From Anthoceros angustus (lineage: Eukaryota > Plantae > Anthocerotophyta), in contig VJWM01000103.1 in the NCBI GenBank assembly GCA_010909165.1, forward strand, positions 930,001 to 994,000: a stretch of 64,000 bases of DNA. The letters run 5' to 3'. A model generated the notes under the pieces. The model had not been told where the DNA came from and made no database searches. It saw only the letters and a list, made by a program, of their open reading frames with translations. Positions within the stretch are counted from its first letter, which is position 1. Every line of letters begins with the position of its first letter. The position numbers and the translations under genes are program-made. This document shows positions 16,568 to 62,352 of the stretch, one piece after another.

Positions 16568-16580
16568 TGGTATCAGAGCC
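16568..16580 (+). promoter_or_regulatory. Primer-binding site complementary to tRNA-iMet
   Basis: TGGTATCAGAGCC; also at 15576, 17530, 18467, ~19613 and 20769. Confidence 0.9.
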
Positions 16581-31696: not shown

Positions 31697-34252
31697 GGTT
31701 AGGTGACCACTAATTTCGGAAACGGGCGAAACCGTCTCTAAGTGGTGTTTTGCATTACGATTGATTTCTTAACAATTGAAATTATGTCCATTTTGACCGA
31801 TATTTTTAGGGCTATTCGCTTTTAACTTATAGATATATTTAAATTTTATATCTGGAAAATTAATTTATTTGATATATTATTAGATTAAGTCTTGCTATAT
31901 ATGCTAGGGACAATTTATTATACAAACTCGTAAGGAATGAAGCGGGAAGTAGGAGGCGAAACGAAGGATGCTCGCTGACTTTTAAGGAGTGATATATGAT
32001 GAGTTATCCACTTCCATCAGGTTGCTCCTAATGTTGAGACTCACAAGCATGGATTTGTGCATGTGATCAGTCGCGAATCGAGCTGCAGGCTCAACCTTGG
32101 GCCAGCGATGAGGATTATCGGCTTATTGTCATGCCCATGGAGTCCTTGCCACATATCCAACGGTACATCGCTAAGCGATGAAGGCCTTATACTGAGGCCC
32201 ATCTAGCCATCCCGAAGTCCAAAACAAATACTGCACATACATGCGGGCTTTTCGGCTAATTACCTTAAGGCCTTTAGAAGCAACAGCAATGTTAAAATCG
32301 GTTGGAGGCTTCATTGCGCATATCTCTACCTTCACAGCGTCCAAATCATTAGTCGGTAAGACATAGTTTGCATCTGGCATGTGCAGCACGTCGTCAACCT
32401 CAATGGGCCATAGCTAAGGCTTGGAATCATTATCTTCCATATCGAAACGCGCCGCAGGCGTGTCAATCTTCCCCGTAATAACCCCCCAAAATGCCTTGGC
32501 ATTGTTCACCTCTACATGCATAACATCCTTGACCCATATTTTGGGAATATGCCTAAAGTACGGTAAACTCCGGAGCAGAAGTGAATCTCGAGTGACACCC
32601 CAAACCCTGGTGTCCTTCCTAGTCCTAGGATCTGCTTCTCGCCAACGGTCCATCTCCGCCAAAACATCATTAGCAGAGGAATCTGGGTGGGCCTTGTTTC
32701 AATGCGGTTGTCAAATGCCGCCAAAGATGTGGCTGGGCCGTCTGGTAGTTGCACCACCTCCGACTGCCTGGGTATACCATCTTCTCCAACTCCACAGACC
32801 ACCTAGCCTCCAAGCCTCGCATCGCAATCCACACCGCAAAGATGCCCTCGCATTTTACAAGCCCAGAAATTACCCGCTCGGAGAATCGACGTGGCAAATA
32901 ATGCAAGACGGAGCGTGAAGAAACGGCCTGGGTCAGTCTTGGGCTTGGAGAAGTCCTCGCAGGGTATACCTGTCCACAAATCACGCAATTCTTGGGTGTG
33001 AGCATGGTTAGGTGACCACTAATTAAAGCAAGTAAACCGCCTCTAAGTGGTGTTTTGCATTACGGTCAGATTTCTTAACAATTGAAATTATGTCCATTTT
33101 GACCGATATTTTTAGGGCTATTCGTTTTTAACTTCATAGATATATTTAAATTTTTATATCTGGAAAATTAATTTATTTGATATATTATTAGATTAAGTCT
33201 TGCTATATGCTAGGGACAATTTATTATACAAACTCGTAAGTGACCGGGAAGTAGGAGGCGAAACGAAGGATGCTCGCTGACTTTTAAGGGTGATAATGAG
33301 GTTATCCACTTCCATCGTACCGTTCTAATTGAGACTCACAAGCATTGGATTTGTGCATGCAATCGCGAGCTCAACCTTAGCGCGATGAGGTTATTGTCGA
33401 CCATGTGGAGTCCCTACATGGCTTCGCTAGAGCTATGTCGTGCAGGCAGGGTGGTGTGGCCGGTGGTGGCGTGATAAAATTTGGGGTCGGAACCAGTTCT
33501 TACTGGATTTGGTAGCTTGGTGGTGCAGGTGCGGTGGCTTTGTGCGGAGGGCGTTTGGGACCGTTAGCCGTGCGGCAGGCTTTTCCTGGAACGTGGAGCC
33601 GTAGTGCGGCCAAGGCAGGTGCGCACGGCTGAAGCGATGGCACCACCAGCCACCGGCCTTGTAGTTTTTTTTCCGTGGTGAGTCCCTACATGGCTTCTGC
33701 TAGAGCTTTGTCGCGCGCGCAATAGGTGGTGTGATGGCGGCAGGATCGCGGCGCAGAACTGGAGTCGTAACTAAGTTCCTACTGATTTGGGAGCTCGGTG
33801 AGTGCAGGCAATAGTGATGGGTTTGTCGGAAGGTGTTTGGGTCCGCCACCGTGGTAAGCGTACCGCCTTCCAGCGAGGAAGCGCAGTGGTGCGGCAACCA
33901 GGGTGCGCAGGCGAGGGACAAAGCCGGCTGAGGTGAAGGACACCATGTCACTAGTACCCAGTAGGGTGGAAGGCTCGACAACAGGTGGCGAGGCACGCGA
34001 TAATTCCGGCAGGTCAAGCGCCTCTGCAACCAAGATGGACAGAACGCTTAGGCGCCACCGGCTAGGTTGGATAGCTGCACAGTGACTGGCTCGCAAGGAC
34101 ACGACATTCACGAAAAATTGGTGGAGCATTGGTGTTGGCACTACAGTGATATGGAATTGTCAACTACAGGTGTGAATGTCCACAAAATAACCACGAGTGT
34201 TGGACTAAAGGAGGCTATTGGAGGTGAAGATTAGATCAAGAGGATAAAAGCG

Positions 34253-34919: not shown

Positions 34920-35870
34920 GATGATGTCATCCTGACCACAAATAGTCACAACTTATTAGCTGAAGTAAAACACTTGCTCAATAACAAGTTTGAAATGAAG
35001 GATATAGGGAGATGAAATTTTGTTTGCGTATTCAGCTTCTCCGTGTAACGGCTGAAGGATTGCTCATTATCCACTAGTACAAGTACTTATGTGCAAGAGA
35101 TCTTGCGAAAGCTTAAACTTTATCAGGCCAGACCACCCACGACAATCTTTACAATAGGTGTGAAGCTCACGAGCCTACAGTGCTAACAGACTGCAAAAGA
35201 AATCAAAGAAATGGCTCTTGTGCCCTACAGACATGCCATAGACAGTGTAGGAAACTGGACACGCCCCGATATTCAATATTCTGTAAGCATGGTATCGCAG
35301 TTCTTGGAGCATCCCGGCCGTGCTCACTAGGTGGTTGCCAAAAGAGTTTTTCATTACTCAAAAGGGACCCAGTGCTATGGACTTGCTTACAAGAGAAGCG
35401 GGCATGCACAACTTACCTTAAAAGGGTTTACAAATGCAGATTGGGCATCTGCCAATGACTCCAGAAGGAGTCTCTACACCTAAAATTGTTTTCTTGTGTC
35501 ATCTGCAGCCATCAATTGGAGCTGCAAAAAGTAGGCATCAATTGATGGATCAAGCCAAGTATTAAAGCTTGATAGATGCATCGAAGGAAGCAGCATGGTT
35601 ACGCACCTTTCTCTCAGATCTAGGGCAACAACAAGTCGAGCCGATGCCTCTCATGTATGACAATATGTCTGCATTAGCGCTTGTTGCTAACCCTAGGTTT
35701 TATGCGAGGACAAAACAATATATTAGGGATGTTGTCGAGCATGGAGTGGTGAAGGTAGACTATGTTTAGACAGACTCCAACACTGCAGATATCCTGATGA
35801 AAAGTCTTCCTCAGCACAAGCATTATCAATACATGGAAGGTCTTGAGCTCATGGACTTCAAGATATTTTG
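34920..35870 (+). mobile_element. Degenerate Ty1/copia RT-RNase H remnant
   Basis: DDVIL...KFEMKDIG, VPYRHAI, TRPDI, KEAAWLRTFLSDLG...YDNMSALALVANPRFYARTK...ADILMKSL; contains stops and frameshifts. Confidence 0.85.
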
Positions 35871-36120
35871 AAAGATTAAGACTTATCTAGGTGATGAGGG
35901 GAAGAGGGAGGAAGCCTCAACTTCCTATTGTGGTGTGTGTTCTTCTTCCAGCCAGACCTATGACTCTTGCGCGGTGCTCACAATAGCCATGTTACCCTTC
36001 AACAACAACAATGGGCAGCAGCTGCTGTATCAAAACAGATTTCAGCAGCAACAGCTTCATTAGAACAGAATTGGGCTTTGCTACTGCAAAACAAAATTTT
36101 GCAGCAACAACTGCAGCACA

Positions 36121-36182
36121 TGTACAAGAGATTAGGCCTGTACAAGAGATTAGGCCCGTACAAGAGATTAGGCCAGTACAAG
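36121..36182. repeat. 18-bp tandem repeat (NGTACAAGAGATTAGGCC) x ~3.4, within a CAG/CAA-rich tract (35990-36600)
   Basis: Directly visible. Confidence 0.9.
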
Positions 36183-37419
36183 TTGCATCATAACAAGAGT
36201 TGTCAACAATAGTTGCATCACAAGAGATACGGGCAACTACAATTGCTTCAGAGCAAGATGGAGTAGTAGCAAATACATCGCTAGAGCAACAGCAATAGGC
36301 AGCTGAAATAGCACACGCATTGCTGTAGGTATGGCAATGAGCAGCATTTGTTGTGCATGCATCACTAGAGGAAGAACAATGGGCAGCAATTGAGCATGCA
36401 GCATTAGAGTGACATCAATTAGGAGTAGCTACACATGCATTTATACAGCATAAGCGATGGGCAATAGCACCTACGCATGCATTGCGACAACAATAGCCAT
36501 GGGCCGGCAACTACTATTTGGCTATAACAATAGCAATGAATAGTAGCAGTTACGCATGCATCGTTACAACAATAGCAGTGCGCAATAGGGTGTGAGCTTG
36601 GGATGGTGACCACTAGTTATGGAAAAGAGCAAAAATATCTTCAAGTGATTATTTTCATGATTGAGTTTTTATTTAAATATTATCTAATAGTTTAAAAAAT
36701 TGGAATTAATAAAATTATGAATATTTTCTGAGTATTATTAAATTTAATAATAATTTAGTATTTTTATAAATTTAAGATTACATAAATTAAAAGAGGCAAA
36801 ACCTTAATAGTCACCTATTTTGTCATAGTTGTAGAAATGAAAGTGATCTTTAGCGTGGGATTATGTTTTTAATAAAGATAAAAACCCTCCTATAAAGAAA
36901 GTCTTGATAAAAACAGAGACACTTAGATTAAAATGTAGCTTTAATCGAAACATTTCTTATATATAGTACTTTAGGACCCTCTGGTTCCGGAAGCGCGTCT
37001 AAAATCAAGCCTCGTCTTATGGACATTGTTATCTATAAATAAATTTTACGATTCTCCATGTCTCCAGAGTGTTTGAAATGATTTTCATTTTCACGGATAA
37101 AGTAGTTTTTTACAATTCTTTATATCTTTTAATCTTTTGTATTCCTTTTTGCTCATCAAGCCGGCAATTACCGGCAACCTAAACTTCATACATTCGTGCC
37201 CACACGACTCTCTCGGTATTGGTCTCCACGATAGGACGCTAGCGCTACATGAACAGTTACCACCCATTCAAACCTTGTGGGCAGACATAGCTTGACATTA
37301 GGCATTATGCCCAGCTTCACCGCGGATCACAGACACCCTACGGGTTACCCACCCCAGAAAACAAACTTTCGTGCGACAACTCGTCTATTTCAATATTCTC
37401 GATCTGCCGGTTTTAAGTT

Positions 37420-39545
37420 TCATACCATCCTCCTCTTTGACTTGGATTTGGCAACTCGATTCTCACACCTTTTCTTGAATATTTCGTCGGAGCAGGAAAG
37501 GAAGTACGAGAGGCTGTCAAAATCGCATCCAATGGCCACCGCATACTCGTATCTTGGTTGTATCCGCGATGATAGGCTGTAGCTCATGAACTGGGGAAAA
37601 TGAACCAATTCCTTGACGTCCTTCTTTAACACTGTCAATAGATAGTCCACCTTTGGCTTGATGCACTGCTCCATACTATGACCATAGATACACGGGTACA
37701 GAGCAATCATCCTGCCAGCCGAGGAAGCAGCAGAACCCATGAATGAGCGGATTGGAAAGAAGATAATAGAGGTAGCTAGAGGACAGAAAGCATAAGACAC
37801 TGCACCTTGCAATGTCGTCCTTGGAAATTCCAAGACTTCGAAAATATTCTGTCTTGACACGTAGATTATCCTCTACGCTGTAATTAAAGATTGACGCCCA
37901 CCTGAAGACCCGACTAAGTTGTGCAGGTTCCAACTCTAGCTCATTTTTGAAAAATTCAGTAGTTTGCATTATTTTGCCTTCCAAGCTCAGGGTAAACATC
38001 TGCCCAGGAAACAGGATAGGTGTTCAAAGTTAGAAGAGATTGAAAGGGATTATATCCTGCACACAGCCTGCTAACATCCGACGCTCAGAGAAACGCACGA
38101 ACCTGAGGATGTGATGTGAAGTATTTGTGCACGTTCACTAGGCCAAAGCCTTGCATGAATTCCATAATTTGATCAATCTTGTTCAAGCCGATACTTGCAA
38201 GACTCGGGTGCTTTGAGTAGGCCTTAACAATGTCCTCAGGCTGCAGGAAACGAAAAAAACAGAGACACATCCTGTGAACTCTACTACCAAAGCCTATCCT
38301 TTTTCCTTCAACTAGTCTCCATCAACAGCCAATAGGTCCAGAACACAGTCACCATGCTCAACGACTGCATCTAAATCTTTAACAGCATCTATGACAGATT
38401 TTCACAAACCTTAAGGCCAAGGTCGATGAGCTTACGAGTCATGGGAAGGACCTTACGCTTCATGTTAAAGGTTAGAACCTGCGGAGAACGGAAGATAACT
38501 TTCACCAGCTGCTTCTGAGAGAATCCCAGCTGCTGAAAATATTCAACCTGTGTCAACACAAAACAAACAGTCTCAGATACCGCTCTATACCTCAGTTAAA
38601 AAGATAGTTATCCACACAGCATCCTTCTGACTAGACCTTACTAAGAAGATAAGAGCGGGCAATGTTCACGCTTCCTGCACCTTGCAAATGCCTCAAAAAA
38701 TATCTCCTGCTCGACACAGAACGACTGAATTACAGGTCTTGCCATTCACCAGCGAAAGTCAACACTCTCACAGCCAACTGAACCATTCAGCGTCCACACG
38801 CTCCCCACAGCAGATAAGAGCTGACCAAACCAAGGGGCGAACCACGACACGAGAGGGTGACGAAAGGACCAACCTTCGGCCGCAACGACGTGTTCACGCT
38901 GCTGCTACCCAGATACACGTTCTCAAACAAACACTTGGCAGCCTGGGCTTTACTCAACCCCACTTCATCAGTCAGGAAATTGGCAACTTCCGTGAGCTTG
39001 GCCAACGATATCCGCAAAACGGCGGATCGCACAGACGACCCTAAATGCGATTGAAGCTTGGCGAGGTTAGCTTCACTCAGCCCCCATTCCCTCAAAAACT
39101 GCACCCTCGTCTGCACATTGGTAGTGAGCATGAACTTGGAGTCCACCATGTCGAATCCCAGCGGTTCCGTAATACTTTCCAGCATCTCGTCATCTGAACC
39201 CAGCTCAGGAGCGACTAAGCTCTCCCCCATTGCAGCCAGCTTCCAAGCCCTGCCCGGCTCCCCCACCTCCCGACCAGGGCTCGCCTCCACATCCACCATG
39301 GCCGCTGCCGATGAATACCTACCACCTCCATGCGAATTCGGCAGCAACGCCAGGACTCGAGGACGGCTCGCAGAAGGCACCGCATCCTCCCCTGACGCTC
39401 TCCCTTGCCCGTCACAAGCCCCCCGGAACCGCCTCACCGCACGCCATCCTTCCCCCAGCCCCACAGATCCGCGCAGTTTCTGGACGAGGCATCGCAGCCC
39501 CGCTCCTGCATTCTTCATCACATAATCCCTGCGCCCAACAAGCAT
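37420..39545 (-). CDS. mTERF-family (mitochondrial transcription termination factor) protein, probably organelle-targeted
   Basis: In-frame GT-AG exons 39545 (or 39518)-38874, 38547-38410, 38240-38103, 37999-37806, 37711-37420. mTERF repeats: LRPKVEYFQQLGFS...FRSPQVL, NYSVEDNLRVKTEYFRSLGIS, IKPKVDYL, FPQFMSYSLSSRIQPRY. The N-terminus is Arg/Gly/Ala-rich, like a transit peptide. Confidence 0.9.
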
Positions 39546-40362
39546 TCACAGTTCCCTGCGCCCGACAAGCATTCACAATACCGGACGAGGTTCGCTTAGT
39601 GTGGTTAGAAGAAAGCCTAAAAAGGGGTTAGTCCCCGCTGGTTAGGGGCGAGGTGGTTTTCCATGCATGAGACCATATAGTGCAAGACTTACGTCACCTC
39701 AATTTAGTTCATGCAGTACGGTTTTAGAACTACATTGTTGCTGAAAAGGATATTGAAACAATGTTGAATGATTTTATTGTGTTTTTAGTAATACTTTATT
39801 GTTGTAGCAATCAACTCACTATCGTAGTGTCTCTATATGCAGTTCTATCAATCTCCCAAGGCCATTAAGGCCTGTCACTCACATGCCTCGCCTTTCCGAG
39901 ATCATGCTATGCACATATGCTACCATGGTTTCAAGCTCGTTCCGTCGGACCGTAGTGGTGTAGAATGAGATCACGGTTACCACCATTCAGGTAGGAAATC
40001 TGGGTTAAGGAAATCTTTACCTTCCGCGCACACATTTTCAAAAGACTTTGTTTCAGCCCGTTCCTGCAGCAAGTTGCTTTGCAAAGCCAGCTCGATCTTC
40101 ACAATGCGACCGGCCCCTGCAATAAGAGAGAATGTTCCAGCTCGCGTTGTAGCCTTCAATTTGTAACTGCGTTGTGATCTGTGCCATCTTAACCGGTATA
40201 GATGTGAGCTGTCCTGAAGCTTGCACTTAGAGAATTAAACAGCACTTACATAAATCCTGCAGAGGAAGCCTAGCCGGTGTTTAGGGGGAAGCTTGTGCTT
40301 AGAAGCCAACGTGCACTTAGTAGCAACATTAGGGAGAAGCTTAGACTTAGGATTAGTCTAAA

Positions 40363-42430
40363 ATGGATCTAAATATGTGTACTAGTGTAGATGAACTACC
40401 TCCTGATGTGCCATTTGTTTTACAGTTGCCGAAGGCTGGGACTTTCAAAAGCAGCGACCTCCATTGGGTTCTATCAAGTGAGAAGCACTCACGGTGGACA
40501 CAAGGTCACGAGAAGACCATGCGAATTGCTCATATCCCGTTTAACTGAGTAGAAGACTTTGTGGCGAATGGCATCCGATGCGAGCATGCTACCAACTTCT
40601 ACAAGAAGGACTCTAAAGGGCCCAAGTTTACCTCGTCCCAATACTCCTGATCCACCCTTACATACACAGTGTCCGCCTTCTTATTGCTGAATGTGGTGAT
40701 GTCTTCTTCTTGTGTAAAATCCTTTTGCATCAAGATCTTGACTCATGGCTCTTGTCTGATTCGGTGTTCCTACCGAGGACTTGAGCAACAGACCTAACTA
40801 GGCCATCCATGGCACGAGACATGCAAAGTTCTCGAGGAAAGTGTGAAACATGGGTGCTGCGAACTTTAAGTGAAGCTTACTATTATGGCCAAAAGTGGCG
40901 AGATTGGGCTTTTGAAGACAAACATCTCGACATGGCGGTATCCTTTGTCATGGAGTTTCTTACGGTGGCATGGCTCGAGATGTCCATGCTTGTCGAGATG
41001 AGAAAAACGATTGGGTTAGACATTGCCTTTACTGTAACATTTCCATAGATGAGATCATGCGTCGGTATACAGAGGCTTTGTATGCCAAGCAGTGCCTTAT
41101 CAAAAGATTAGGGATGACTTCTTGCAACGGTACGATGTAATCAACATTGCTAGAAATGTGGTCATAGGTGATTGGAAACTTCACCTTGATGATTCAACTT
41201 CAGTTTCCTTTTGGATTAGGCAAAATGCTTCCATGGTGTTCTATCAATCCACCGAGGAGCAACCCTTTGCCTTAGGTATCCAAACTTCTTTCATGGTGGA
41301 ATCTATGATTAAGTATGGGAATTGCAGTGTTTTGGCTTTGGATGCAACCTTCGGCATGAACAAGTACAAATACCACTTGTTCTCATGGCCTTGATCGACA
41401 CTTAAGCGGTGTGTGCATGGGCTATCACAGGCAACAATTGAAACATTGGTGGCATGGTTATCGACCTGCGTCCGGGTTGAGCGGCATGATTCTACTTGGA
41501 CAAGGTAGCTTCCTTGTGGGCCCAGAAATCTGCTATTCAACAAGTCTGGACTCGTAACATGCCCATCTTCTTGTGTTTGTACGTCACGAAGGCATGGAGG
41601 AAAAATCTATTGAAGAAGGTAAGGTCAGAGCCGGACAGGATCTCGATTTGGGCTGAACTTGGTGAGATCATGTATGTCAATGGGTTTTCCACTGCAGATA
41701 TTTGTGTGGCTGCAGCAGAAGCTATATTGGACTTGTTCTATGCACGTTGGGCAGAAAGGCAAATTGCGTTTGTTAAATACGTTAAGGAACAATGGGGCGG
41801 GACCATAAGTATGTGCCATGGGACCTTCAAGTTCATGCACTTCGTTCCTGCTCTCCTGTTCATCTCTAACTGAACTGCTTGTTATTTTGGAATAGCGATG
41901 TGGCTCTGCCATGCGAGGATGCTGCCACATGCACATGTTGGGCAGAATACCACTTCCGCTGTTGAAGCCTTCCACAGATACATGAAGGAGAGAGCATGTG
42001 TTTCCAAGTCCAATTTAGCAGGCCGTCGAATGGATTGGCTGCTCCACCAGCTTGTGAACGTTGTTGCACGACATTTTTGGTATCAACATTTTATAAAGGA
42101 AGGTGGTTATACTCGCAACAAGAAGCAAGAGATGTTAGAGGAGACAACACTTGCAAGTGCTGAAGGTATTCCGATTAGTTCAGTCATATTGCCACACTCT
42201 GAACATGTGTCTGCCCAGTGCCTGTCCACTAGCTCGCCTGGAAAATAGTACGTCATAGACCATGCTTTTTCACCATGGGCTACATGTACGTGCCCCATGG
42301 GTCTCAAGGCCTTCATCTGCAAGCATGTTATTCGTGTGCAACAACTTCTTGGTGTCTGGAAGATGGCCTTTGTTAGATCTCGTGAAAGTTCTCGGACAAA
42401 TGGAGCATGATACCTTGCTAGAGACAACAA
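40363..42430 (+). mobile_element. MULE-like DDE transposase with SWIM zinc finger, disrupted by stops and frameshifts
   Basis: RDDFL...PFALGIQTSFM...ALDATFGMNKYKY (first catalytic Asp), FLCLYVTKAW, NTTSAVEAFHRYMK (catalytic Glu), RRMDWLL, and SWIM CTCPMGLKAFICKH at ~42285-42326. Confidence 0.85.
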
Positions 42431-43949
42431 ACCCGGCTCTAACAAGGTCTCCTTAGGACTGGTGGCGGCTCCACGGTCACTAGTTGGAAGGTGGACACGG
42501 TCTAAGGTTCACAAAAGCCACCCAAAACCATGTTTTCTGATTTCATTAAAAAAAACCCAAACTAGGAGCAAATCATAGAGGATCTTTTCCGTATTTGTAT
42601 GTCGCATCTCATATTAGTTTGGCTAACCAGCGGGTACATTGCCTATAAAGCAGATTTGAAAATCGTGGCAATTTTGTATGGACAACCAAAAAGCACAAGC
42701 GCAATGGAAAGTCCACATGTGTTGCGTCGGTGTCACACCGTCATGGTCGCCGCTCTGCATTAGTGGGGAGGGTCGTGGTGGCACGGGGCGTTACGTGCAT
42801 AAACCTTGCATCTGCCAATGGTAGGAGTGGAGGAAGATTTCGGACGCCTACCGCTCATGTCTCAGCACTGCGCGACCCCGTCTGCGAATCGTTTGGAAGT
42901 GGCTTGCCGCCTCGAATATTTGCGCGATGGAGACCCACCTCTCGGCGGGAAGCGAGAATTCCACATGGCGATGGAAATTGGAAGTTGACCGCGGTGGTGG
43001 CAATCACAACATGGGCGGGTTCCTTTCAAGCCTGGAGTGATCCGCGCTTCATTGCTTGGTCCTTAAGGAATTTGGTTGAGGCTGGCGGTGCAAACTCGCG
43101 ACACTTGCAGCGTGTTGATCAACACAGGATTCCACTCGGGGTTGGAGCGGTGTGAATGGTGTGGAGGGCAAAGGAGCACGACATGTCCAGTGTACTTGGT
43201 GGTCAAGGATAAAATTGGAGAAAGTCATGCTACATGTGTGCAGGCGGTGTTAGTGCGGCTATCTGAAAGCATTGATCATGTTTGTATTGTGACACATTGT
43301 CATATCATGAGTGTTTTACGTGAAATGATTAACATTATCATCATTGATCTCTGTGAAATCCTTACCTTGCCTTTATGTGCGACACGCCCATGTTCTCGCT
43401 CATCAATACCGGCGTCAATCTTCTGCGAACACATTCTCGAATCGTCACCACTCCCATGCTTCCTAGCTTTCTGCTCCACCGGCCGTGTTCGTTGTCTAGT
43501 GCCTCCGGGGACCTTGCTTGATGTGTTTGTTGTGTTCATAGCCGCATGCACGTTCTACCAAAGTGCGATACCACCGTCGGTGCTTAAGACCACACCGGTT
43601 CCTCCTACCGAATCCTCGAAACAAACACGTAGCCTATCCGCATCCGCGACACACCTCGATCGTGAGCAAAGTTTTCCAATCCTACATCCCCACCATCGGG
43701 TGTCAAGCACACCCGGAGGAGGGCTCTTCCACCTTCACTTGCGCTCCGCATCCCCAAGGACCATTGAGTTGTCGCCGCGGCTTCACCACATGCCATATGA
43801 CCCTTGGTCTCGGGCTTCCTCGTTGGTCTCTACTTCACACATATGAACCCGGGCACCACCATGTTGTTCACCATGGGCTCCTTATTGAACGTCTTTCCGC
43901 CTCCATAGCCCTCCTCGCCCACCTCCTCCTCTTAGTCGTGTCCATGGAA

Positions 43950-44600
43950 TTGATTCAAGGTCCATGAATTGAGCGCACACAGGATCCACATCAGCATGAC
44001 ATTACGGCATAAGCGAGCAGTGCTATCATACCCGATCCTGCGCGCCCGTCCAGACCCAATCTCCCTCTCAGATACGGTGAATCAACCTCTTCAAGAGTCT
44101 TAGGGGCTTCGATGGAAACAACCCGATCATCCGCGTGTTGTAACACAATTTTAGTTCCACGCTCGTTCGGCAAACACGTTGTCACTCCACCGCCAAGTTG
44201 CGTCGGTTCTCACGAGCACAAGCGGTTGAGGCACACAATCCTTATCCAAGCTCCTGGCGCAAGTGAAAAGTCCACGTATCGGCTGTCCTCGACAATCTGT
44301 CACATTGGTTTTATGCATAACATGTCGTCCACGGCACCCCACGCTTCCATCGCACTTCTCTCACCATAGATGTGTCATCCGAGAATGGAAGACCCAATCT
44401 GAAATACAGGATGTGGTGATGCCTTTGAACGCATGATGACCCCTTCAAACTCGCCTTGGTAAATCTTGTGTCATACTCTCGTGATTGGGGATCTAGATCC
44501 AAGCCTCAGGGAGGTCTAACAACAACAAAGCATACGGTCGGGGCTCTACAAACGGGCCATGTTCACTATGTTGCCACATATCCCGACCTTGCTGGGTTTT
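43950..44600 (-). pseudogene. Beta-class DNA amino-methyltransferase domain (N6_N4_Mtase-like), frameshifted
   Basis: Reading across frameshifts: YALLLLDLP-x-GLD (motif IV, D-L-P at 44516-44508), then SKPLRLLKRLIHR (motif X, K at 44109), EGDWV-LDGRAGSG (motif I, 44067-44030) and RNVM-x-DVDP (motif II). The order IV-X-I-II is the beta permutation. Confidence 0.72.
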
Positions 44601-45076
44601 TCTGGCTTGGAGTCGTTCACGATTGTCATCAGCTTATCCTCAGATGTGGTCGATTTCAAGGCACGTTGCGACTCCTCCATCTGCTTCCAAGCTCTGGCCT
44701 TGAATATGTGCTCCTTGAAGTTCTCAGGTAGGGCACCCCACTCAAGGCAAGTGTTGGCACTGCGACATGAAAGACACATCCCCACCTCAAATGCAAGCGG
44801 ACGTTCTCTAATGATATGCGGTGTGAATGCCTCCACTTTCCATGACTTATAAGGACAAGAAGCGGCACAAGAGAGAAACTACGATTTGGGTATAGCTAAG
44901 TGTTCATCGAGGACGATTTTTGAAGGCGGTGGAAGTTACTAATTTGATTCACCATGCGATGTCGGGATATCGTTCTGAACCTCTTCAAATGTCTCACAGT
45001 GCAAATGCTTGGCGATGTCACATGGATGAGGTTGAGTTTTTGGCCTTGTCCACCCACACGAACATTTGTTTCAATG

Positions 45077-45900
45077 TCAATTCTCGGCCGGACTTTCATG
45101 CATCTTGTCTTCAAGTTGTTGTTCCAGTGCGCTGATGCCACGAAACACTTCCATACCCTCAACGTATACTAAGCTCCTTTGTGTCAATGACCAAGTTTGC
45201 TCTAACTTGTTGTCTTCCTTGAATTCTGGGCCTTGTATTTGGTTGAGCCCGAGTGCTTCCACCCTCGAGCAAGCTTTGTCTCCCACTTCTCAAAGATTTC
45301 ATCCACGTACTTCCACACCTCATCATCAACCTTCGCAACACAATAATCCAGTGTCCGGTTGTCCACGAGGCGGTGATAACTGACCTTAGGTCCATGCTTG
45401 GCTGCATCCCACTTAGGAACCCTGCCCAGCCGGGCATATATCTCCAACTTCCAGTCTAAGTCACACTTCAGCCCATCAGCTAGCCTGGCCTTCATCTCAG
45501 TTCTGATGTACCTCACACGGTCGATGAAAGTAAAAGTCTTCCTGGCATCCGCAATGGTGTTGTGATCAGTGGCAACTAACCTCATCTCCTCATTTGTGAG
45601 GCCAGCAAGAACATATGCATCCATCCACTTGTACTCTTGAACCAATGGATACAAGTCGGCTAGTCTAGATCGCTGGAAGGAATGATTCCTCCCAATACAT
45701 AAAATTTGTACACCCCGATCCACCTTATCCATGTCAAAGAAGTTCTTGTTGGGACCGGGCGGGTCTACAATGACAATCATGGGCAGCACCACCACCCACG
45801 TGGAATGCTTCATCTTTTGCATCAAAGCCTCCACCCAAGCCAGTCTAGCTTACGTACCTTGCCACAAAGTTCTTACGGAGGTCTACTGATGGACAGCTTT
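45077..45900 (-). pseudogene. ParB/Srx-like domain upstream of the methyltransferase on the same strand (probably the same protein)
   Basis: 210-aa ORF 45202-45834: VEALMQKM...PMIVIVDP...ILCIGRNHSF...AYVLAGLTNEEMRLVATDHN...TFIDRVRYIR. This fits the ParB pattern L...I...P+++V...+IxGxH...V+.+.EE...A..N...+..+++. Confidence 0.55.
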
Positions 45901-46499
45901 AACGTGGACTCCCATACTCTCTTTTCCATTGCCTCCCTCGCAACATCTCTCCCTCGGCCCTCGTCATCGCTAGCTGTCATCCGTGGCTCTGACGCATCCT
46001 TGGCCTTCTCTATGAACTTTGGGAGCTCTTCCCCTCTCGGACATCATGTGCCATTCGTTTGCCGCACTTGTTGACCTTCCCACCCGCCGTCCTCCACGCG
46101 ATTGCCCCTCTCAATCCCTTCCTCTTTTCCTCGATTGTCTACCCAAGCGGGTCGGCTTGAACCCTTGAGTGCCATGGGCAGACCCAAATCCCGGTCCGTT
46201 GCATCCACCTCGCCCCATCGTCATCTTCCACGTCTTCGTCGGGGCTGGATATGATCCACCGGCCTCTCGGGCCATCGGCATGCCATCGCCAAACCCCTCA
46301 TTGTCCTGGTCCCCACCCGCATCCTCATCTTCGTCTTCGTCGGCTAGAGGTTAGGGTGACATCATCGCGTGCCATGGGCTAGGAAAAACCAGCGGCGGAG
46401 TGTGGGCGGACTGTTGCTTGGACTCAAGCACCGGACGTCCGTGGCCGCAACCCTCTTACCAGGGCTTTCATTTCGCAAACTAGTTCAAACGTGTCCCGG

Positions 46500-47796
46500 A
46501 ATTATATTTTGTGCCACCACCTTTTGTTGGTTTCCGCGCAGATCATGCATATCGGTGGCGGTTGCGACACACTGTGATGGATGGATTTACTGATCCCATT
46601 AGCACTAGGAGTTGCCATTTGATTTCCACTCGGCGCAGATGCCATGCTAGGGGCCTTCTCGCAGCGATGCCCTTTCGATGTAAGCAATGCATCATCCGCA
46701 CACCTTCTAAACATTGCTGGTGCAAAGCCTTGTGGAAGACACGATGTCCATCACCGTGTCGCAATGCCTCCAAAAGTTCTTGCCTTTTCCGCTCTGGTTG
46801 GCGCCACAATGTCAAAGTTCTTCAGCAGAGTATACTCTAATCCATTGCGGGTCCAGACGAAGAGGCTCCTTGTGCTTGAGCCAGATCAGCAATATGACGT
46901 ACACCTGCTCATCCTTCATGACTGACTGTGTGAAAACAACTGCTCCCGCACATTTCTTTTGGCTGGTGTGGTTCGCATCTTCCTCCATCAACACATACAA
47001 GAAGAGCAAGTCTTGATTGGGTCGTTGTTGCACTGTCCAACTTCTCTTTGTAATGTCAAATGGCGAGATCATCTTGTACATCCGTGGATCAAGTCAATAT
47101 CGGACCGCTTGTAAGGACTCGGAAAGATGCCTTGGTCGGAGGATGCTCTTGTGGAAAGACCCGCATCGGTGGCGCGATTTGAGTTGTCCTTGGGTCTGGG
47201 CTCGTCGCCTCGTTCAAGGCACGTGAGTCTGCCCTTCCCTCGCGCCTTTTTTCTCCACCGGAGCGTCCTGCGATTTGTTGGAGTCATTCTTCCGCTTCCC
47301 CTTGAGGAGCCATTACATGCAACTATGAAAGAAGTGAGATCACGAAGTGTTTAGATTGTTAAAAGTGATACACGCATGAGCTGCAACTTCTCGGAACAGG
47401 GCGATCTGTGTGCGGGAGTTGGAGTTGATGCTCACAGACTAGCCCAGCCTGCACCCTCGAGACAACACAATTGCCGCAGCGATGAGGAGGTCGGCGGTGT
47501 CGATATCTGCTGCCGGCCCGATGGACAAAGTGCGGGTGAGTGTGAGAACGACCCGTTTTCTCGGTCTTGGCAATCTCTTGCTTTTCCGCCCACACATAAG
47601 CTAGATGGAAATACACATCTTCCCAAAGCGAGAATGAATCTATACCATCCGAGAAAGGGGAAGGTGGGGTCATTTGTGCCTTCATGAAGGAAGACACAGG
47701 CAAGGCGAGCTCGTAATCAAGCAACTCCTTAAATGCTTTGTCGCGGCCGTGTTTTGCCATTGTCCCGGCTAATGTGGCAAATGCAAATTTGAGCAT
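46500..47796 (-). pseudogene. Unassigned frameshifted ORF segments in the MULE cargo (N-terminal part of the cargo gene or a separate gene)
   Basis: Successive protein-like frames at 47359-47796, 46812-47081 and 46543-46815; no motif recognised. Confidence 0.4.
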
Positions 47797-47922
47797 ATTC
47801 TAAGGTATATGCTAGTTATGCCACAGCTAAAATAGTGTTCATGGCATAACGATGGGCACCTAGAGTGATTCGGCCACCGACTAGCAGTACCGCTAGCGTT
47901 TCCTACCGGCGCAAAGTGGGCA

Positions 47923-49526
47923 TGTGGGCTACGGACCTTGGGGTTAGGAAATAAGTGGGGTTTTGTTTTTTGTAGGTTGGAATAGTAAAATAAGGCGGAA
48001 AAGGAGGAATAAGCACGGATGGCGCTTGGACGGGACGAGGTAAACAACGGACCACTCCCGACTAAACAGCGGACCACTCCCGGAGTAAGCAACGGACCCG
48101 ATACCACTGGAACCCGACTACACTCCGGAGCAAGTCCCGGAGAAGCTCCATACCCTGCCTTGAGCACGGGGTGAGTCCGGACCCCTCACGGCCGTAGCAG
48201 GATAAGCGCCGAAAGCAACTTTGAATTAGTCAGGAGGATGATTGAGGCACCACGTCACCCTCGGCGGAGGGCCGGACTTCAGGCGGGTCCGAAGGAGGCG
48301 AGGGAAGGCCCGGGATAGTGCGGCCACAGGGGACCTTGGGGCGTTGTTCGGCAGCGGTGGCGGTGAGGGAGCGGCCCGGAGGCGGAGCGAGGGGCGGCGA
48401 ATGTGAGTGGCACCACACCTCACCATGGAAGAAGGGGCCAGCGAGTCGGAGGCGATCGGGAGCGGAAGGACTCCAGGGAGAGCCACGGAGGAGTCCCGTG
48501 AGGAAGAAACCGGGCGCGAGTTCGGACCACGAGGTCCGGACTCACGAAGGAAGACCGGACCACGAGGTCCGGACCTCGAGAAGGAGGCGGACCACGAGGT
48601 CCGGACCCGAGACAAGGTCGGACCTAGCCGGACTCGGGAAATAAGCCGGACTCACGAGTTCGGGAGTCGAGGCAGACCTCGAGGTCGCTGCGGCGATGAG
48701 GAGCCCCGACTTCGCTAGAGGCGATAGCCGGTGGCCCCGGCGGACCGAGGCCGAGGAGGATGGCGTCGTAATAGCGGTTGTCGAACGCCGTGTAGCCAAC
48801 GGAGAGAGGAGGCCCGCCTCACGGATCATCCGATTGGGCGCCACAAGCTGTGAGATTGGACCACCCATCCGTGGAACCCGATCTTCAGCCCACGTGAAGG
48901 AGATAGGGAGGAAATAGGATGGTAGGCGGCCGATTAGGGCATCTTGGTAGCCATCTCGAATAGGTGTAATAAAGCGCCGACCTTGGGCGTAGTATAAGAG
49001 GAGGCCGCTCTAGTAAAGTATCTTTCTCTTGGTGTTGATGCGCACGGACCTTTGTGGCGTCTTCTTGCTGAGTCACGAGTCAGAGCCGACTCGGGAGGAT
49101 CAAGGTCCGTGGACTTAAGCGTGTGGTGGTGTGTGCGGGGAAGGTGGGCGGACCCTTGTTCGTCGAGCGGTCAGCGTCGGCAGGCCCGGGCGTGGCCGGA
49201 GGTACCGGGAGGTGTAGCGAGCCGGACGGGAGGCCGGAGCAGCGAGGAGGTCGGGTAGCCAGCGTCTTTTCAAGGTTGATAAGCGTGAGAGGAAGCGATG
49301 GGAGGGGATGAAAAGCAGTGGCGAACGGCGGACGCAACGGGTCCTTAAGCGTTTGGCCACACGGGCTGTCGGTGAAGCGTTATAAATAGTTTATGTTGTG
49401 TGAGTGTTAAGGTGAAGTGGACTAGAAAGGTGAGAATCGGTGAAGCAGCCATCATTCTCTTGGGAGCGGACTCCATACCACAACGACACGGGATTGTGCG
49501 CGGCATCATCGCAAAGTCGCGCCACA
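47923..49526 (+). mobile_element. Ty3/gypsy (Athila-like) 5' LTR, ~1.6 kb, TG...CA
   Basis: Starts TGTGGGCTACGG, the same point that follows the PPT at 59254 and 60702. Ends GTCGCGCCACA, the same point that precedes the PBS at 62353. TATAAATA at ~49381. Confidence 0.88.
48523..48606. repeat. ~33-bp tandem repeat x3 in the LTR with core CGGACCACGAGGTCCGGAC
   Basis: Directly visible; recurs in the other LTR copies. Confidence 0.85.
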
Positions 49527-51564
49527 TTTTGGTATCAACATTTCACAAAGGAAGGTGGTTATACTACAAGAAGCAAGAGATGTTAGAGGAGACAACACTT
49601 GCAAGTGCTGAAGGTATTCCGATTAGTTCATCATATTGCCTCACGAACATGTATGCCTTGATTCACTAGCTCGCTTTGGAAAATGGTATGTCATAGACCA
49701 TGCTTTTCACCATGGAAGAAGGGGCCAGCAGTCGCTTGGGGCGATCGGGAGCGGAAGGACTGAGGAGAGCCACGGAGGAGTCCCGTGAGGAAGAAACCGG
49801 GCGCGAGTTCGGACCGAGGTCCGGACTCGAAGCCGGACCACGAGGTCCGGACCTCGAAGGCCGGACCACGAGGTCCGGACCCGAGACAAGGTCGGACCTA
49901 GCCGGACTCGGGAAATAAGCCGGACTCACGAGTTCGGGAGTCGAGGCGGGACCTCGAGGTCGGCTGCAGCGAGGAGCCCCCGACTTACGCTAGGGAAAGA
50001 ATGGCCGGTGGCCCCGGCGGACCGAGGGGAGGCAGGAGGATGGCGTCGTGTGTGGCGGTTGTCGCCGCCATATAACGGCAGGATTCGGGAGAGAGGAGGG
50101 CCCGCCTCACGGATCATCCGATTGGGCGCCTGGCTGTCGGGGCGGAGATTGGACCACCCATCCGGGGCGAGACCTTCCAGCCCACCCGTGGCGAAGGAGA
50201 TAGGAGGAAATAGGATGGTAGGCGGTGATTAGGTATCGGCAGCCATCAGCTGAATAGTGTAATAAAGCGCCGACCTTGGGCGTAGTATAAGAGGGGGCCG
50301 CTCTAGTAAAGTATCTTTCTCTTGGTGTCTGGAAGATGGCCTTTGTTAGATCTCGGAAAGTTCTCGGACAAATGGAGCATGATACCTTGCTAGAGACAAC
50401 AAACTGGCTCTAAAGGTCTCCTTAGGACTGGTGGCGGCTCCACGGTCACTAGTTGGAAGGTGGACACGGTCTAAGGTTCACAAAAGCCACCCAAAACCAT
50501 GTTTTCTGATTTCATTAAAAAAAACCCAAACTAGGAGCAAATCATAGAGGATCTTTTCCGTATTTGTATGTCGCATCTCATATTAGTTTGGCTAACCTAC
50601 ATTGCCTATATGTATTTGAAAATCGTGGCAATTTTGTATGGACAACCAAAAAACAAGCGCAATGGAAAGTCCACATGTGTTGCGTCGGTGTCACACCGTC
50701 ATGGTCGCCGCTCTGCATTAGTGGGGAGGGTCGTGGTGGCACGGGGCGTTACGTGCATAAACCTTGCATCTGCCAATGGTAGGAGTGGAGGAAGATTTCG
50801 GACGCCTACCGCTCATGTCTCAGCACTGCGCGACCCCGTCTGCGAATCGTTTGGAAGTGGCTTGCCTCGAATATTTGCGCGATGGAGACCCCACCTCTCG
50901 GCGACCGACTCTGAAGAGAATTCCACATGGCGATGGAAATTGGAAGTTGACCGCGGTGGTGGCAATCACAACATGGGCGGGTTCCTTTCAAGCCTGGAGT
51001 GATCCGCGCTTCATTGCTTGGTCCTTAAGGAATTTGGTTGAGGCTGGCGGTGCAAACTCGCGACACTTGCAGCGTGTTGATCAACACAGGATTCCACTCG
51101 GGGTTGGAGCGGTGTGAATGGTGTGGAGGGCAAAGGAGCACGACATGTCCAGTGTACTTGGTGGTCAAGGATAAAATTGGAGAAAGTCATGCTACATGTG
51201 TGCAGGCGGTGTTAGTGCGGCTATCTGAAAGCATTGATCATGTTTGTATTGTGACACATTGTCATATCATGAGTGTTTTACGTGAAATGATTAACATTAT
51301 CATCATTGATCTCTGTGAAATCCTTACCTTGCCTTTATGTGCGACACGCCCATGTTCTCGCTCATCAATACCGGCGTCAATCTTCTGCGAACACATTCTC
51401 GAATCGTCACCACTCCCATGCTTCCTAGCTTTCTGCTCCACCGGCCGTGTTCGTTGTCTAGTGCCTCCGGGGACCTTGCTTGATGTGTTTGTTGTGTTCA
51501 TAGCCGCATGCACGTTCTACCAAAGTGCGATACCACCGTCGGTGCTTAAGACCACACCGGTTCC

Positions 51565-53050
51565 TCAAACTTTGCGGCGCCATGGCAACTCGACCAAACA
51601 AGCGTACTCCCTCTTTGGAGGAAGAAGGAGAGCCGAAACCTTGTGGAGGATTTCGTCAGCCAACTTCAATGGGAGGATCGGATGCAGCTCATCCAATTTT
51701 CAAGGGGTCCTTCGAACGGCGGCTCGGTGGTAGAAAGTATCGCCACCCTGCTCCCACGCCTCTTGAAGCTTTGAAGGATGCCTTCTTGAAGCGATTCCGG
51801 AATTGACCAAGAGCTACGTATGTCCAAACTCGAGAATCAGGCGAGGCAAGACGGAGAAGTTGGGATCGTACATCGAGCGGTTCTGCGCCGAGATCGACAC
51901 CCACCCACACCACCATGCAAAGTGATGCGTTGGTTCGCGGGCTTACCTAAGCCAATGGCTAAACACGTCCGTTGGCGAAAGATGTGAGCAAGGCGGTCCG
52001 GGCGGCGGAGAATTACGAAGAATCGATGCACCAGCGATCGAGGGCGCCTCTAGGAGGAAGAAGAAGAAGAAGAAAGCGGGGTCGGACTCAAGATGAAGAG
52101 TCCTCGGAAGAGGAGGATGATGAGGCGAGGTGGCATCGGAGGAGGAAGAGGACTCGAGGAAGAATCAGGATGCCATGGAAGAAGAAGAACCTCGTCAAGA
52201 AATAAAAGAGTGAGTGCGGAGGGTGGAAAAGAAGGAGGTTATGATACCGTGCGAGAGGTTCCATGACCCAACCCGTTGAAAGAAGTAGCGGGTGAGGAAG
52301 ATTTGGAACGGGTGATGAAGAGGGTGGAGGAGTTGACGATCAACCAAGTGAAGGACAAAAGGCGGGAAGGCGGCCACCACGCAGTTCGAACCCATCGTGG
52401 TGTGCGGTATGCCAGGCACTGGGCACTCAATCTATGCAGTGAATGGGAGGATGCTTACAGTGCAAGAAGCACCCCGGGCGATGCAAACGATGTATCCACG
52501 GAGGTCCATCCATACACCCTCCGATGCAACCCGAATGGGAGGACCACCGGAATCCCGGGTGATGGTCTTGGGCTGGGAACCGGGCTACTCAACGCCGCCC
52601 ATATCCCACGCAAGGTAATGGAGATTTTGAGCAGTTGTGTGGGATTATGCGGCCGGGCACATGGCGGCGTGTCCGAATCCTCGTTCAAGAACAGTGCGCT
52701 CGCCACTCGGCAGGAGCCGACCCACGCCTCCCTTCCTAAGGCTGCGCCATGCTACAAATTGAGGATGCACAGGTGGCGGAGTGGGAAGAGGCGCCGAAGG
52801 GACTTGGAACGGAGTGGTACGGCGAGGAGGAGAAGGCGGATGGAGGTCTTGGAAGTGTCAACCGGCCGGAAGGAGCGAAAGGAGAGGAGGAGGAAGAGGA
52901 GGAGGAGGAGAAGGCGGATACGGAGGGCGGGACACAGCAAAGGAGGCAACTCCAGCTAAGGAAGGAGAGTTAAATCAGACTGCTCTGCGGAGGCCGCCGG
53001 TCAAGCCTCCGGAACGTTGGGAGCGGACCCACCCAAAGCAACACCTCGGT
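51565..53050 (+). mobile_element. Gypsy gag region, frameshifted (second copy at 62550-63750)
   Basis: ALKDAFLKRF gag motif, acidic/basic tracts, and a CGMPGH-type zinc knuckle near 52400. Confidence 0.75.
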
Positions 53051-53269
53051 TTCCACCGGATGTGGTCGATTTCAAGGCACGTTGCGACTCCTCCATCGCT
53101 TCCAAGCTCGGCCTTGAATATGTGCTCCTTGAAGTTCTCGGTAGGGCACCCCACTCAAGGCAAGTGTTGGCACTGCGACATGAAAGACACATCCCCACCT
53201 CAAATGCAAGCGGACGTTCTCTAATGATATGCGGTGTGAATGCCTCCACTTCCATGACTTATAAGGACA

Positions 53270-56200
53270 AGAATGTGGAGGTAAGGGTAGTGTCTCATAC
53301 GGACCCCAGTGGTTCGTAGAAATTATGGGGTGTGTGATCAAGAACGCCTGGATACGGTCGGAGTGAACCTCATCACGAAGCCACCGCAAGAGGCAGTTGG
53401 GGTTCACGCTTTGAGCCATCCACCAAAACCCTTGATGGCGGATATGTCACGGAGCGCCTGGGAGTTGTCCGAGTCAAGCCACCATAGCGGAGCCCCTATA
53501 CATTGGACTTGTGGTCATCAAACCGCGGACCTAGGTATGGCTTTGGGACGTCCGTGGCTCGGGCTTGCTCGACAAAGTTACACTTTGGAAGGAAGGAAAT
53601 CCACTTCAAACCCGTGGATTGGGATCCAAGGTCGAGAGGGAAGGGTGGCTCTCACTTGGAGTAAGGATACATCTTGTGGGGAAAGCTGAGCACCACGGAG
53701 GGTACACCTCGGATAGTACGGATGATGAAAGGGAAGACACAGGACGCCTACCCTTTCCCCAAAATCACATGGTCGAGGAGGAGATGGATTACCGGAGGAT
53801 GCCTTTGGAGCGGAGGTGGAGAGGTCGCCGATTGCTTGGGTGGGCGCAGAACAAGAGACGGGGCGGCGGTGAAGAAGAGGGTCCAAAGATGAAGAGGTGG
53901 GACCGAAGTAACCCGCTCACCTCGGACGAACTCTTGAGAATGGGGATGCGAGAGGGCGATCCCGAGTGGAGGCGAGGGGTTTGGGGCCGAGGCGACGAGG
54001 CAGGAGAGTGAACCCGGACGGCGTGGAAGAAGTGGAGGTCGGCCAGCAAATTCACAGTTTAAAAAGGCATGCCTCCGGACTGAAGGAAGGACTAAAGCAA
54101 CTTTGGGGAGTTTTGCGGTGTTCGCCTTCAAGGTCACGGACATGAAGGGCATTAGAAGTGGGAGAGCATAAGATCGATTTGAAGCCGGGAGGCGGTGATA
54201 GTGACCTTAGGTCCATGCTTGGCATCCCACTTAGGAACCCCGCCGGCATATATCTCCAACTTCCAGTCTAAGTCACACCACCCATCACTAGCGGCCTTCA
54301 TCTCGATTCGATGTACCTCACACGGTCGATGAAAGTAAAAGTCTTCCGGCATCCGCAATGGTGTTGTGATCGGTGGCAACTAACCTCATCTCGAAGCCAC
54401 CGCAAGAGGCAGTTGGGGTTCACGCTTTGAGCCATCCACCAAAACCCTTGATGGCGGATATGTCACGGAGCGCCTGGGAGTTGTCCGAGTCAAGCCACCA
54501 TAGCGGAGCCCCTATACATTGGACTTGTGGTCATCAAACCGCGGACCTAGGTATGGCTTTGGGACGTCCGTGGCTCGGGCTTGCTCGACAAAGTTACACT
54601 TTGGAAGGAAGGAAATCCACTTCAAACCCGTGGATTGGGATCCAAGGTCGAGAGGGAAGGGTGGCTCTCACTTGGAGTAAGGATACATCTTGTGGGGAAA
54701 GCTGAGCACCACGGAGGGTACACCTCGGATAGTACGGATGATGAAAGGGAAGACACAGGACGCCTACCCTTTCCCCAAAATCACATGGTCAGAGGAGGAG
54801 ATGGATTACCGGAGGGATGCCTTTGGGCGGAGGTGGAGAGGTCGCCGATTGCTTGGGTGGGCGCAGAACAAGAGACGGGGCGGCGGTGAAGAAGAGGGTC
54901 CAAAGATGAAGAGGTGGACCGAAGTAACCCGCTCACCTCGGAGCTCTTGAGAATGGGGATGCGAGAGGGCGATCCCGAGTGGAGGCGAGGGGTTTGGGGC
55001 CGAGGCGACGAGGCAGGAGAGTGAACCCGGACGGCGTGGAAGAAGTGGAGGTCGGCCAGCAAATTCACAGTTTAAAAAGGCATGCCTCCGGACTGAAGGA
55101 AGGACTAAAGCAACTTTGGGGAGTTTTGCGGTGTTCGCCTTCAAGGTCACGGACATGAAGGGCATTAGAAGTGGGAGAGCATAAGATCGATTTGAAGCCG
55201 GGAGGCGGTGCCGGTCAATCCACAAGCTCAACCCCAAGTATTCGATCAAGGTGAAGGAGGTCCTTGATAAGTACAGGAGGCGGACATCATTTTCCCCATA
55301 TCAGCAGAGTGGGTTGGATTGTGGTGGTCCCAAAAGCGGCCGGACAAATTCGGGTATGTCAAGATTGGAGGAAGCTCAACGCGGAGAAGGACCACTTCCT
55401 GCCATTCGTTTGCCGCACTTGTTGACCTTCCCACCCGCCGTCCTCCACGCGATTGCCCCTCTCAATCCCTTCCTCTTTTTCCTCGATTGTCTACCCAAGC
55501 GGGTCGGCTTGAACCCTTGAGTGCCATGGGCAGACCCAAAATCCCGGTCCGTTGCATCCACCTCGCCCCATCGTCATCTTCCACGTCTTCGTCGGGGCTG
55601 GATATGATCCACCGGCCTCTCGGGCCATCGGCATGCCATCGCCAAACCCCTCATTGTCCTGGTCCCCACCCGCATCCTCATCTTCGTCTTCGTCGGCTAG
55701 AGGTTAGGGTGACATCATCGCGTGCCATGGGCTAGGAAAAACCAGCGGCGGAGTGTGGGCGGACTGCTTGGACTCAAGCACCGGACGTCCGTGGCCGCAA
55801 CCCTCTTACCAGGGCTTTCATTTCGCAAACTAGTTCAAACGTGTCCCGGAATTATATTTTGTGCCACCACCTTTTGTTGGTTTCCGCGCAGATCATGCAT
55901 ATCGGTGGCGGTTGCGACACACTGTGATGGATGGATTTACTGATCCCATTAGCACTAGGAGTTGCCATTTGATTTCCACTCGGCGCAGATGCCATGCTAG
56001 GGGCCTTCTCGCAGCGATGCCCTTTCGATGTAAGCAATGCATCATCCGCACACCTTCTAAACATTGCTGGTGCAAAGCCTTGTGGAAGACACGATGTCCA
56101 TCACCGTGTCGCAATGCCTCCAAAAGTTCTTGCCTTTTCCGCTCTGGTTGGCGCCACAATGTCAAAGTTCTTCAGCAGAGTATACTCTAATCCATTGCGG

Positions 56201-56855
56201 GTCCGACGAAGAGGCTCCTTGTGCTTGAGCGGATCAGCAATATGACGTACACCGCTCATCCTTCATGGTAGCGTGACAAACACCTTGGACATCTAAGAAA
56301 GTGCTTGGGCGGAGACTCAATTGAGCCTACACCGGAGAAATGCTACTTTGGAATGACGGAGGGAATCTTGGGGCATCGGGTGTCGGCGGGGAATCGAGGT
56401 GGACCGGGACAAGGTCCGGGTCATCCGATCTCCACCGCCCGGCAGACCTAAAGGAGGGAGAGGTTTCACAGGAATGGTGGGATACCGCGGTTTATTAAGG
56501 ACTTTGCGAAGAGGCGGCTAAGTTGGAACTCTGCGGAAGGAGGAGGTTTGGACAGTCTCGGGAGAGAGGAGGCCTTGGGGTTCTGAACACCTTGGTAAGC
56601 GCACGGTTCTAAGAGGACGGGGGAGCAAGAAATTTCATGTGTGTAGATGTGTCCGCTTTTGCTATCGGAGTAGTCTTGAGCGGAAGGGCGACAAGCGGGA
56701 TTATCCGTATACTACGCGGGCACTCACCAGCGAAAATACACAACTCTGAGGCCGAAGCCTTGGGTATGGTATATCTTTGTCAAGAAATTCCGACACTACA
56801 CACTACCGGTGAGTTTGTGTTCTATGTAGACCACTTTGGAAGCATCGGTGAATAA
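53270..56855 (+). mobile_element. Gypsy pol fragments (protease, RT, RNase H) interleaved with re-copied MULE cargo
   Basis: GRPWL (protease, ~53545 and ~54560); IDLKPG...VKEVLDKY...VVPK (RT, 55080-55400); PEKCYFG, LGHRVS, FIKDFA and VDVSAFAIGVVL...EAEAL...FYVDH (56280-56855). Confidence 0.85.
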
Positions 56856-60545: not shown

Positions 60546-60689
60546 AGGTACTTGAGGTGGATGGGTCCTTACCAGTGGTGCAGTGTGCAAATGGGTCCGT
60601 TCAACTCGGCCTGATGGATGGATTGCCAACCCGGGTGAGCGGGTGGCGGGTGAAAATACCATGCCTAGTGTTGGCGGAGGCATGCAGAT

Positions 60690-62349: not shown

Positions 62350-62352
62350 TTT

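Follow-up and report, generated by a model that had tools for sequence, protein, structure and literature searches.

A ParB-like and beta-class amino-methyltransferase fusion gene in Anthoceros angustus, probably an accessory gene of a DUF7869-type DNA transposon family

Cut-and-paste elements encode accessory regulators such as CACTA TnpA, VANDAL VANC and MuDR MURB, and Mutator-like elements (MULEs) capture genes. ParB proteins have a consensus GxxR motif with a CTP-binding arginine. Methyltransferases (MTases) also travel with mobile DNA: DNMT3/DNMT genes are carried by LTR, DIRS and LINE elements (PMC12344493), and the MTase domain of DIRS1 has been judged inactive through substitutions (PMC4738411). 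Permuted, bacterial-type amino-MTases are found in eukaryotes as bdelloid N4CMT (PMC8885841) and Marchantia DN4MT1 (10.1101/2021.02.12.428880), both of them host enzymes with SPPY and no ParB, a term found in neither paper. In amino-MTases the last residue of the motif must be aromatic, and N4CMT loses its activity when the Ser and Tyr are mutated (PMC8885841). ParB_N and N6_N4_Mtase domains are fused in phages and prophages at ParB-terminase loci (PMC4738411). In the literature that we searched, no eukaryotic DNA transposon with a ParB-fused bacterial-type amino-MTase is known; the family analyzed here is described in none of it, and DUF7869 was likewise found in no paper.

The locus lies in a 64,000-nucleotide stretch of Anthoceros angustus DNA (contig VJWM01000103.1, positions 930,001 to 994,000; hereafter the window). 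An initial annotation had proposed that the minus strand at 43950-45900 hides a ParB-like plus beta-class amino-MTase gene, carried as cargo by a Mutator-like transposon. Our analyses confirmed a ParB-like/beta-class amino-MTase fusion of bacterial or phage type in a plant DNA transposon family. The gene resembles known beta-class MTases (PF01555; M.RsrI, M.MboIIA, CcrM, M.BceJIV and DpnA) in its motif order (IV, X, I), profile and model similarity, but motif IV is mostly DxPYG in the family and DLPRG in this subfamily, motif I lacks Phe here, and the gene is eukaryotic and contains an intron. It has the same two-domain order as the phage fusions, and its relatives match phrog_67 and phrog_498; unlike those fusions, it has a long helical linker, an extra N-terminal domain, GGNHS rather than GxxR, and a transposon context. 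With N4CMT and DN4MT1 it shares a permuted bacterial-type amino-MTase in a eukaryote. N4CMT matched the family profile with E values of only 3e-4 to 7e-4, and no link of the family to either enzyme was found, DN4MT1 being set apart by description only. As in DIRS1 and the DNMT-carrying retroelements, a mobile element bears an MTase-fold gene, but those elements are retroelements with MTases of other classes, whereas here a DNA transposon has a ParB-fused beta-class MTase as a gene of its own. TnpA, VANC and MURB are likewise second genes of elements with element-specific repeats and would share a likely self-targeted role, but this likeness is a functional analogy only, with no sequence relation seen.

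The eight peptides quoted in the initial annotation were all found on the minus strand where it had placed them (45705-45676, 44590-44549, 44549-44508, 44505-44470, 44112-44074, 44053-44021, 44006-43995 and 43992-43981), collinear and in three frames over 45705-43981. The gene is thus present in the interval first proposed, but its true span is longer at both ends (Table 1). As references we used the nearest complete genomic relative (L011) and a version of it lacking its GT-AG intron (L012). Exon-wise alignment to the nearest relatives gave seven pieces between 47125 and 43838 with 35-60% identity, and an additional N-terminal piece aligned as far as 47350, so that the window is collinear with L011/L012 over ~3.5 kb without foreign pieces. 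The order is N-terminal domain, acidic low-complexity stretch, ParB-like domain, helical linker, intron, MTase and short tail. The sole long open frame in the gene, 45849-45205, has relatives in plant sequencing-run contigs at 58-61% identity. Frameshift-aware alignment with a profile built from 15 MTase domains of the family, closest relatives left out, recovered the whole beta-class domain end to end with 54 bits, compared to at most 24 bits in 112 other window tiles and at most 19 in 60 shuffles; when frameshifts were penalized more heavily, 31 bits stood against a null of 22. A first profile (BLOSUM, seven distant relatives, stiff frameshift penalty) had given a nonsignificant 28 against a null maximum of 27, and the deeper HMM succeeded. 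The MTase domain in the window is real.

Table 1. Features of the gene-bearing region, in window coordinates
Feature	Position	Strand	Evidence or remark
SWIM-type MULE transposase remnant, probably outside the element	40363..42440	+	SWIM E 2.9e-5; ZSWIM RNaseH-like E 4e-4, below cutoff
Candidate left end of gene-bearing element, 14-bp motif	42441..42454	+	Common to L011 3' flank, same orientation; suggestive only
Whole ParB-like plus beta-class amino-MTase gene (DLPR subfamily), frameshifted in assembly	43838..47350	-	Collinear frameshift-aware alignment to L011/L012
Conserved C-terminal tail, KEPMVN block	43838..43928	-	59% identity over 29 aa to L012
Beta-class amino-MTase domain	43963..44583	-	Profile alignment, family PF01555 matches
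Motif I region, EGDWxxDGxxGSG	~44069-44030	-	Alignment
Motif X, KPxxL	~44110	-	Alignment
Motif IV, DLP(R)G	44516-44503	-	Alignment
Putative intron, limits approximate (donor not clear)	44732..44931	-	At position of L011 GT-AG intron, absent from L012
Helical linker joining ParB and MTase	44932..45255	-	Exon-wise alignment
ParB/Sulfiredoxin-fold domain and following helices (predicted); family motif GGNHS, here GRNHS	45256..46013	-	Relatives, AlphaFold model
Family palindrome, core GGACGTCC, one base short	46429..46443		Only window match besides its two mosaic copies; matches L011 site
N-terminal domain without assigned fold, common to L009/L011/L012	46780..47125	-	Alignment, 35% identity; no Pfam match
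TG...CA LTR, Gypsy-type retrotransposon	47923..49530	+	Just upstream of gene, at expected head-to-head transposase site

Of the Pfam profiles that the initial annotation had proposed to search, PF01555 was detected in several relatives (E 7.6e-18 in the Ginkgo relative); separate pieces of the window gene gave no significant match, and the ParB profile matched none of 29 family members, three of which showed DUF6551 weakly. Modeled with AlphaFold (pLDDT 78, the first helices missing from the model), the ParB piece matched ParB-family structures over its residues 1-97 (Myxococcus ParB, Z 6.2, rmsd 2.2 over 68 aa). The top 11 rows of this comparison, the best at Z 6.2, were all ParB-like; a wider structure search placed PadC first (Z 5.7), and the structure-atlas neighbors were ParB_N and ParB_N+N6_N4_Mtase clusters, including viral ones. 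An atlas feature search with the same piece returned weak, unrelated clusters. The modeled scores, modest (Z under 8; Foldseek E 0.66) yet concordant, suggest that this part adopts a ParB/Srx fold. Because the family has GGNHS or GGGHT and lacks the GxxR arginine, its use of CTP is uncertain.

The motif order in the window, IV then X then I, defines a beta-class enzyme. The family MTase profile matched DpnA, M.BceJIV, CcrM, MboIIA and RsrI with E values of 1e-11 to 1e-8. A model of the DLPR half-domain likewise retrieved BceJIV, MboIIA and CcrM first (Foldseek E 1e-4 to 6e-4; best 1.2e-4), and the C-terminal part of a DLPR relative matched PF01555 at 2e-5, just under the cutoff. Most relatives have DxPYG as motif IV and DLFSGSG or DLCxGxG as motif I. 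These DxPY-type relatives probably write 6mA, because motif IV starts with Asp and the nearest structures are adenine MTases. The motif IV expected to be DPPY-like in the window instead reads D-L-P-(R)-G. All three clade members with a readable motif (L001, L002 and L012) have DLPRG, with the Arg encoded by three different codons (AGA, CGA and AGG) in the three relatives. The window has D-L-P, two bases and G, corresponding to the L002 codons minus one base, and no single-base change there could restore Tyr or Phe. The DLPR subfamily therefore departs from the amino-MTase motif (D/N/S/H)PP(Y/F/W), and motif I departs from FxGxG, reading DGRAGSG in the window and DDGSGPG in L012, with Phe absent. 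With Arg in place of the motif IV aromatic residue and a motif I without Phe, the proposal of a 6mA/4mC writer is doubtful for the subfamily of this copy.

The subfamily is nonetheless under purifying selection, with a dN/dS of about 0.15: values were 0.13 for the MTase of L002 versus L012 and 0.13-0.16 for ParB. The window and L012 MTases differ by a pN of 0.38 and a pS of 0.81, at which synonymous sites are saturated. The DLPR protein thus appears to be kept for some function, with canonical methylation doubtful. Judged from these sequences, a pseudo-enzyme that flips or binds bases is slightly favored; an amino-MTase still active with Arg replacing the aromatic residue is a weaker candidate, and some other chemistry has only a small chance. 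A pseudo-enzyme binding its own element seems somewhat likelier than an active 6mA writer.

A profile from close relatives identified full-length family members in Chara braunii, Riccia sorocarpa, Adiantum nelumboides and Ginkgo biloba, and the MTase profile added Ceratopteris, Riccia fluitans and environmental contigs. All named relatives come from lineages with flagellated sperm, and the occurrence of the module in Chara, Riccia, Adiantum, Ceratopteris and Ginkgo indicates that it is old. No close viral or prokaryotic relative of the family was found, the only such matches being C-terminal, at three loci; a metagenome scan with the DLPR alignment was blank. In a tree of ParB regions, with rows picked from profile-search matches and midpoint rooting for drawing, the window falls into a clade with L011 supported at 100/97. 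L012 corresponds to the L011 gene in spliced form, with three introns removed (L011:2406-6737 versus L012), despite a stop and a frameshift; it is apparently a transcribed, broken DLPR copy. In Chara, the gene model CBR_g41648 fuses two ParB-MTase copies ~25 kb apart (L003:10001-12200 and 35701-38487), and a third, fragmented copy lies at ~44400-46300 of L003. No transposase was seen at the Chara locus, which is 43% N.

The neighbors of these relatives bear on the transposon that carries the gene. In Riccia, a DUF7869 (PF25273) transposase lies in the same insertion as the gene and head-to-head with it at L008 (E 3e-54), the same transposase lies downstream of the gene at L004, and the elements are marked by palindrome arrays that occur only within them. 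The L008 element (L008:2877-14161) sits between two LINE halves and is internally rearranged relative to L004. At L011, a DUF7869-type N-terminus is encoded head-to-head ~0.7 kb upstream of the gene (27% identity, E 3e-16); this is the sole DLPR-clade locus with a visible transposase, which the contig end cuts. The DLPR clade also has its own palindrome, which occurs seven times within the L011 element but is absent from the host flank; the single window site lies within the gene. Downstream of the gene are host genes, not a MULE, in L011 and a host ubiquilin gene in L009. Thus, the initial annotation's placement of the gene in a Mutator element was not supported: the readable neighboring transposases (L004, L008 and L011) are DUF7869-type and never MULE, and the linkage that it had proposed to test in other copies was seen at none of the 15 loci fetched, several of which are short.

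We consider it probable that a streptophyte DUF7869-type cut-and-paste family carries this gene as its second, accessory gene, here in an element that abuts or is inserted into the 3' end of a MULE and has been split by a Gypsy retrotransposon. Neither a profile of 41 sequences nor the L011 N-terminus detected a DUF7869 remnant anywhere in the window, including 42.4-43.9 kb, where one had been suspected by eye; the partner transposase is therefore assigned from the relatives (L004, L008 and L011), in which it occupies the same element. Its expected site in the window is filled by Gypsy sequence, which continues from 47923 to the window end, and the window shows neither a far end nor a target-site duplication of the element. 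The candidate left end has a chance expectation of about 1-2.4%, is located just 3' of the MULE SWIM finger, and coincides with a jump in run X1 contig depth, a crude measure, from 0 to 140 across 42441. Two other candidates were set aside: the GGTCCGGACC palindromes at 48.5-49.9 kb, which are part of the LTR and not of the element, and, as a possible partner, the CACTA (DUF4218) remnant at 28-33 kb, from which a host mTERF gene and the MULE separate the gene.

Building on the N-domain/ParB/linker/beta-MTase architecture, the DUF7869 genes and palindromes of the relatives, the selection and the spliced relative, this accessory-gene reading would work as follows. The element would abut an unrelated MULE at the latter's 3' end, its own transposase displaced beyond the window by the Gypsy insertion. 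By analogy with ParB on parS, the ParB part may clamp the element's own palindromes and so deliver the MTase fold to element DNA, making the protein a self-targeted regulator, either a transpososome helper or an anti-silencing factor like CACTA TnpA or VANDAL VANC. The DLPR branch would then, marginally more probably than otherwise, bind or flip bases without methylating. In non-flowering plants, the module could be a source of 6mA or 4mC that has gone unrecognized, and it could give an element a novel means of self-protection or self-regulation. The element palindromes are the obvious candidate binding substrate, and the conserved DLPR variant bears on whether an MTase fold persists as a reader or shield.

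An unlikely reading, although the foremost of the alternatives, is that a SWIM-type Mutator captured the ParB-MTase gene, or an entire nested element, and mobilizes it as cargo in convergent orientation. The MULE remnant, which may resemble the At1g60560/At4g13970 SWIM family, is indeed convergent with the gene across a gap of ~1.4 kb, and gene capture by MULEs is known. However, none of the 15 fetched loci has a MULE near a relative, and a metagenome scan with the MULE piece was blank. No long inverted repeats enclosing both genes with a 9-11 bp target-site duplication were found in 39300-50500 or in the whole window, a test weakened by the noisy assembly and the LTR insertion. Read depth also differs between the two: Illumina contigs cover the gene deeply but leave 41591-42378, within the MULE remnant, empty. 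We do not count the apparent second MULE-plus-MTase copy (49.5-58.7 kb) as independent support for capture, because it includes the same LTR junction and has microhomology joins; it is the same locus.

Rather improbable is a more elaborate version, in which a phage-derived ParB-MTase would load on element palindromes to mark or shield DNA, the DLPR branch would have been rewired under selection, and the module would here have switched to a Mutator transposase as a portable self-marking or anti-silencing cassette.

There is also a slim chance that the adjacency is an assembly chimera, or that the gene is a stranded, nonautonomous fragment without a partner here. The assembly invites this suspicion. 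Window segments 9972-20781, 27992-33359 and 53366-55210 contain staggered duplications of 1-1.7 kb in which gaps outnumber substitutions; a long-read assembler probably stuttered in its consensus there, and tandem arrays in this genome therefore need checking. At 49516-58668, Gypsy gag/pol alternates with pieces of 42063-48236 through ~10-bp microhomology joins, a demonstrable mosaic and likely itself an assembly chimera. No short-read contig spans the MULE-gene stretch, and the family is apparently high-copy. Against this reading, the gene is collinear with its relative over 3.5 kb without foreign pieces, and the mosaic repeats the order of MULE end, spacer and gene, which suggests that reads spanned the junction. 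The same noise probably affects the gene itself, which has 24 deletion-type frameshifts, no insertions and two stops in 2.3 kb, with one unbroken stretch of ~580 bp. The mosaic, staggered duplications and microhomology joins point to a noisy long-read consensus, and short-read contigs of run X1 have one extra base at each of the breaks 44552, 44394 and 44380, although X1 may be from a relative rather than the source, so that other copies may account for these bases. Most breaks are probably sequencing error, and the copy may therefore not be dead.

That the motifs are chance or noncoding look-alikes, as the six or more frame changes required and the lack of Pfam matches in the window pieces might suggest, has virtually no probability and is already refuted by the profile score (54 versus 24 bits), the 46-60% identity to relatives across ParB, linker and MTase, and the codon-position bias.

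The window holds several further features. LTR copies of ~1.6 kb with TG...CA ends and GGTCCGGACC palindromic repeats are located at 47923-49530, 59253-60551 and 60701-62353; a purine tract lies before the copy at 60701, and after it come a TGGCGCCG primer site and gag. The CACTA-type transposase remnant occupies 28500-33100 on the minus strand (DUF4218 E 1e-25). Site 34587 resembles the 42441 end motif, with the AAGGTCTCCT core in both, and may be the end of the CACTA remnant. Copia RT/RNaseH remnants lie at 17672-20157 and 34920-35856 on the plus strand, and LINE endonuclease-like pieces at ~11490-15160. The host mTERF gene at 37423-39545 on the minus strand (PF02536 E 1e-16) is head-to-head with the MULE, and its first exon is an unbroken frame of 252 codons, unlike the repeats.
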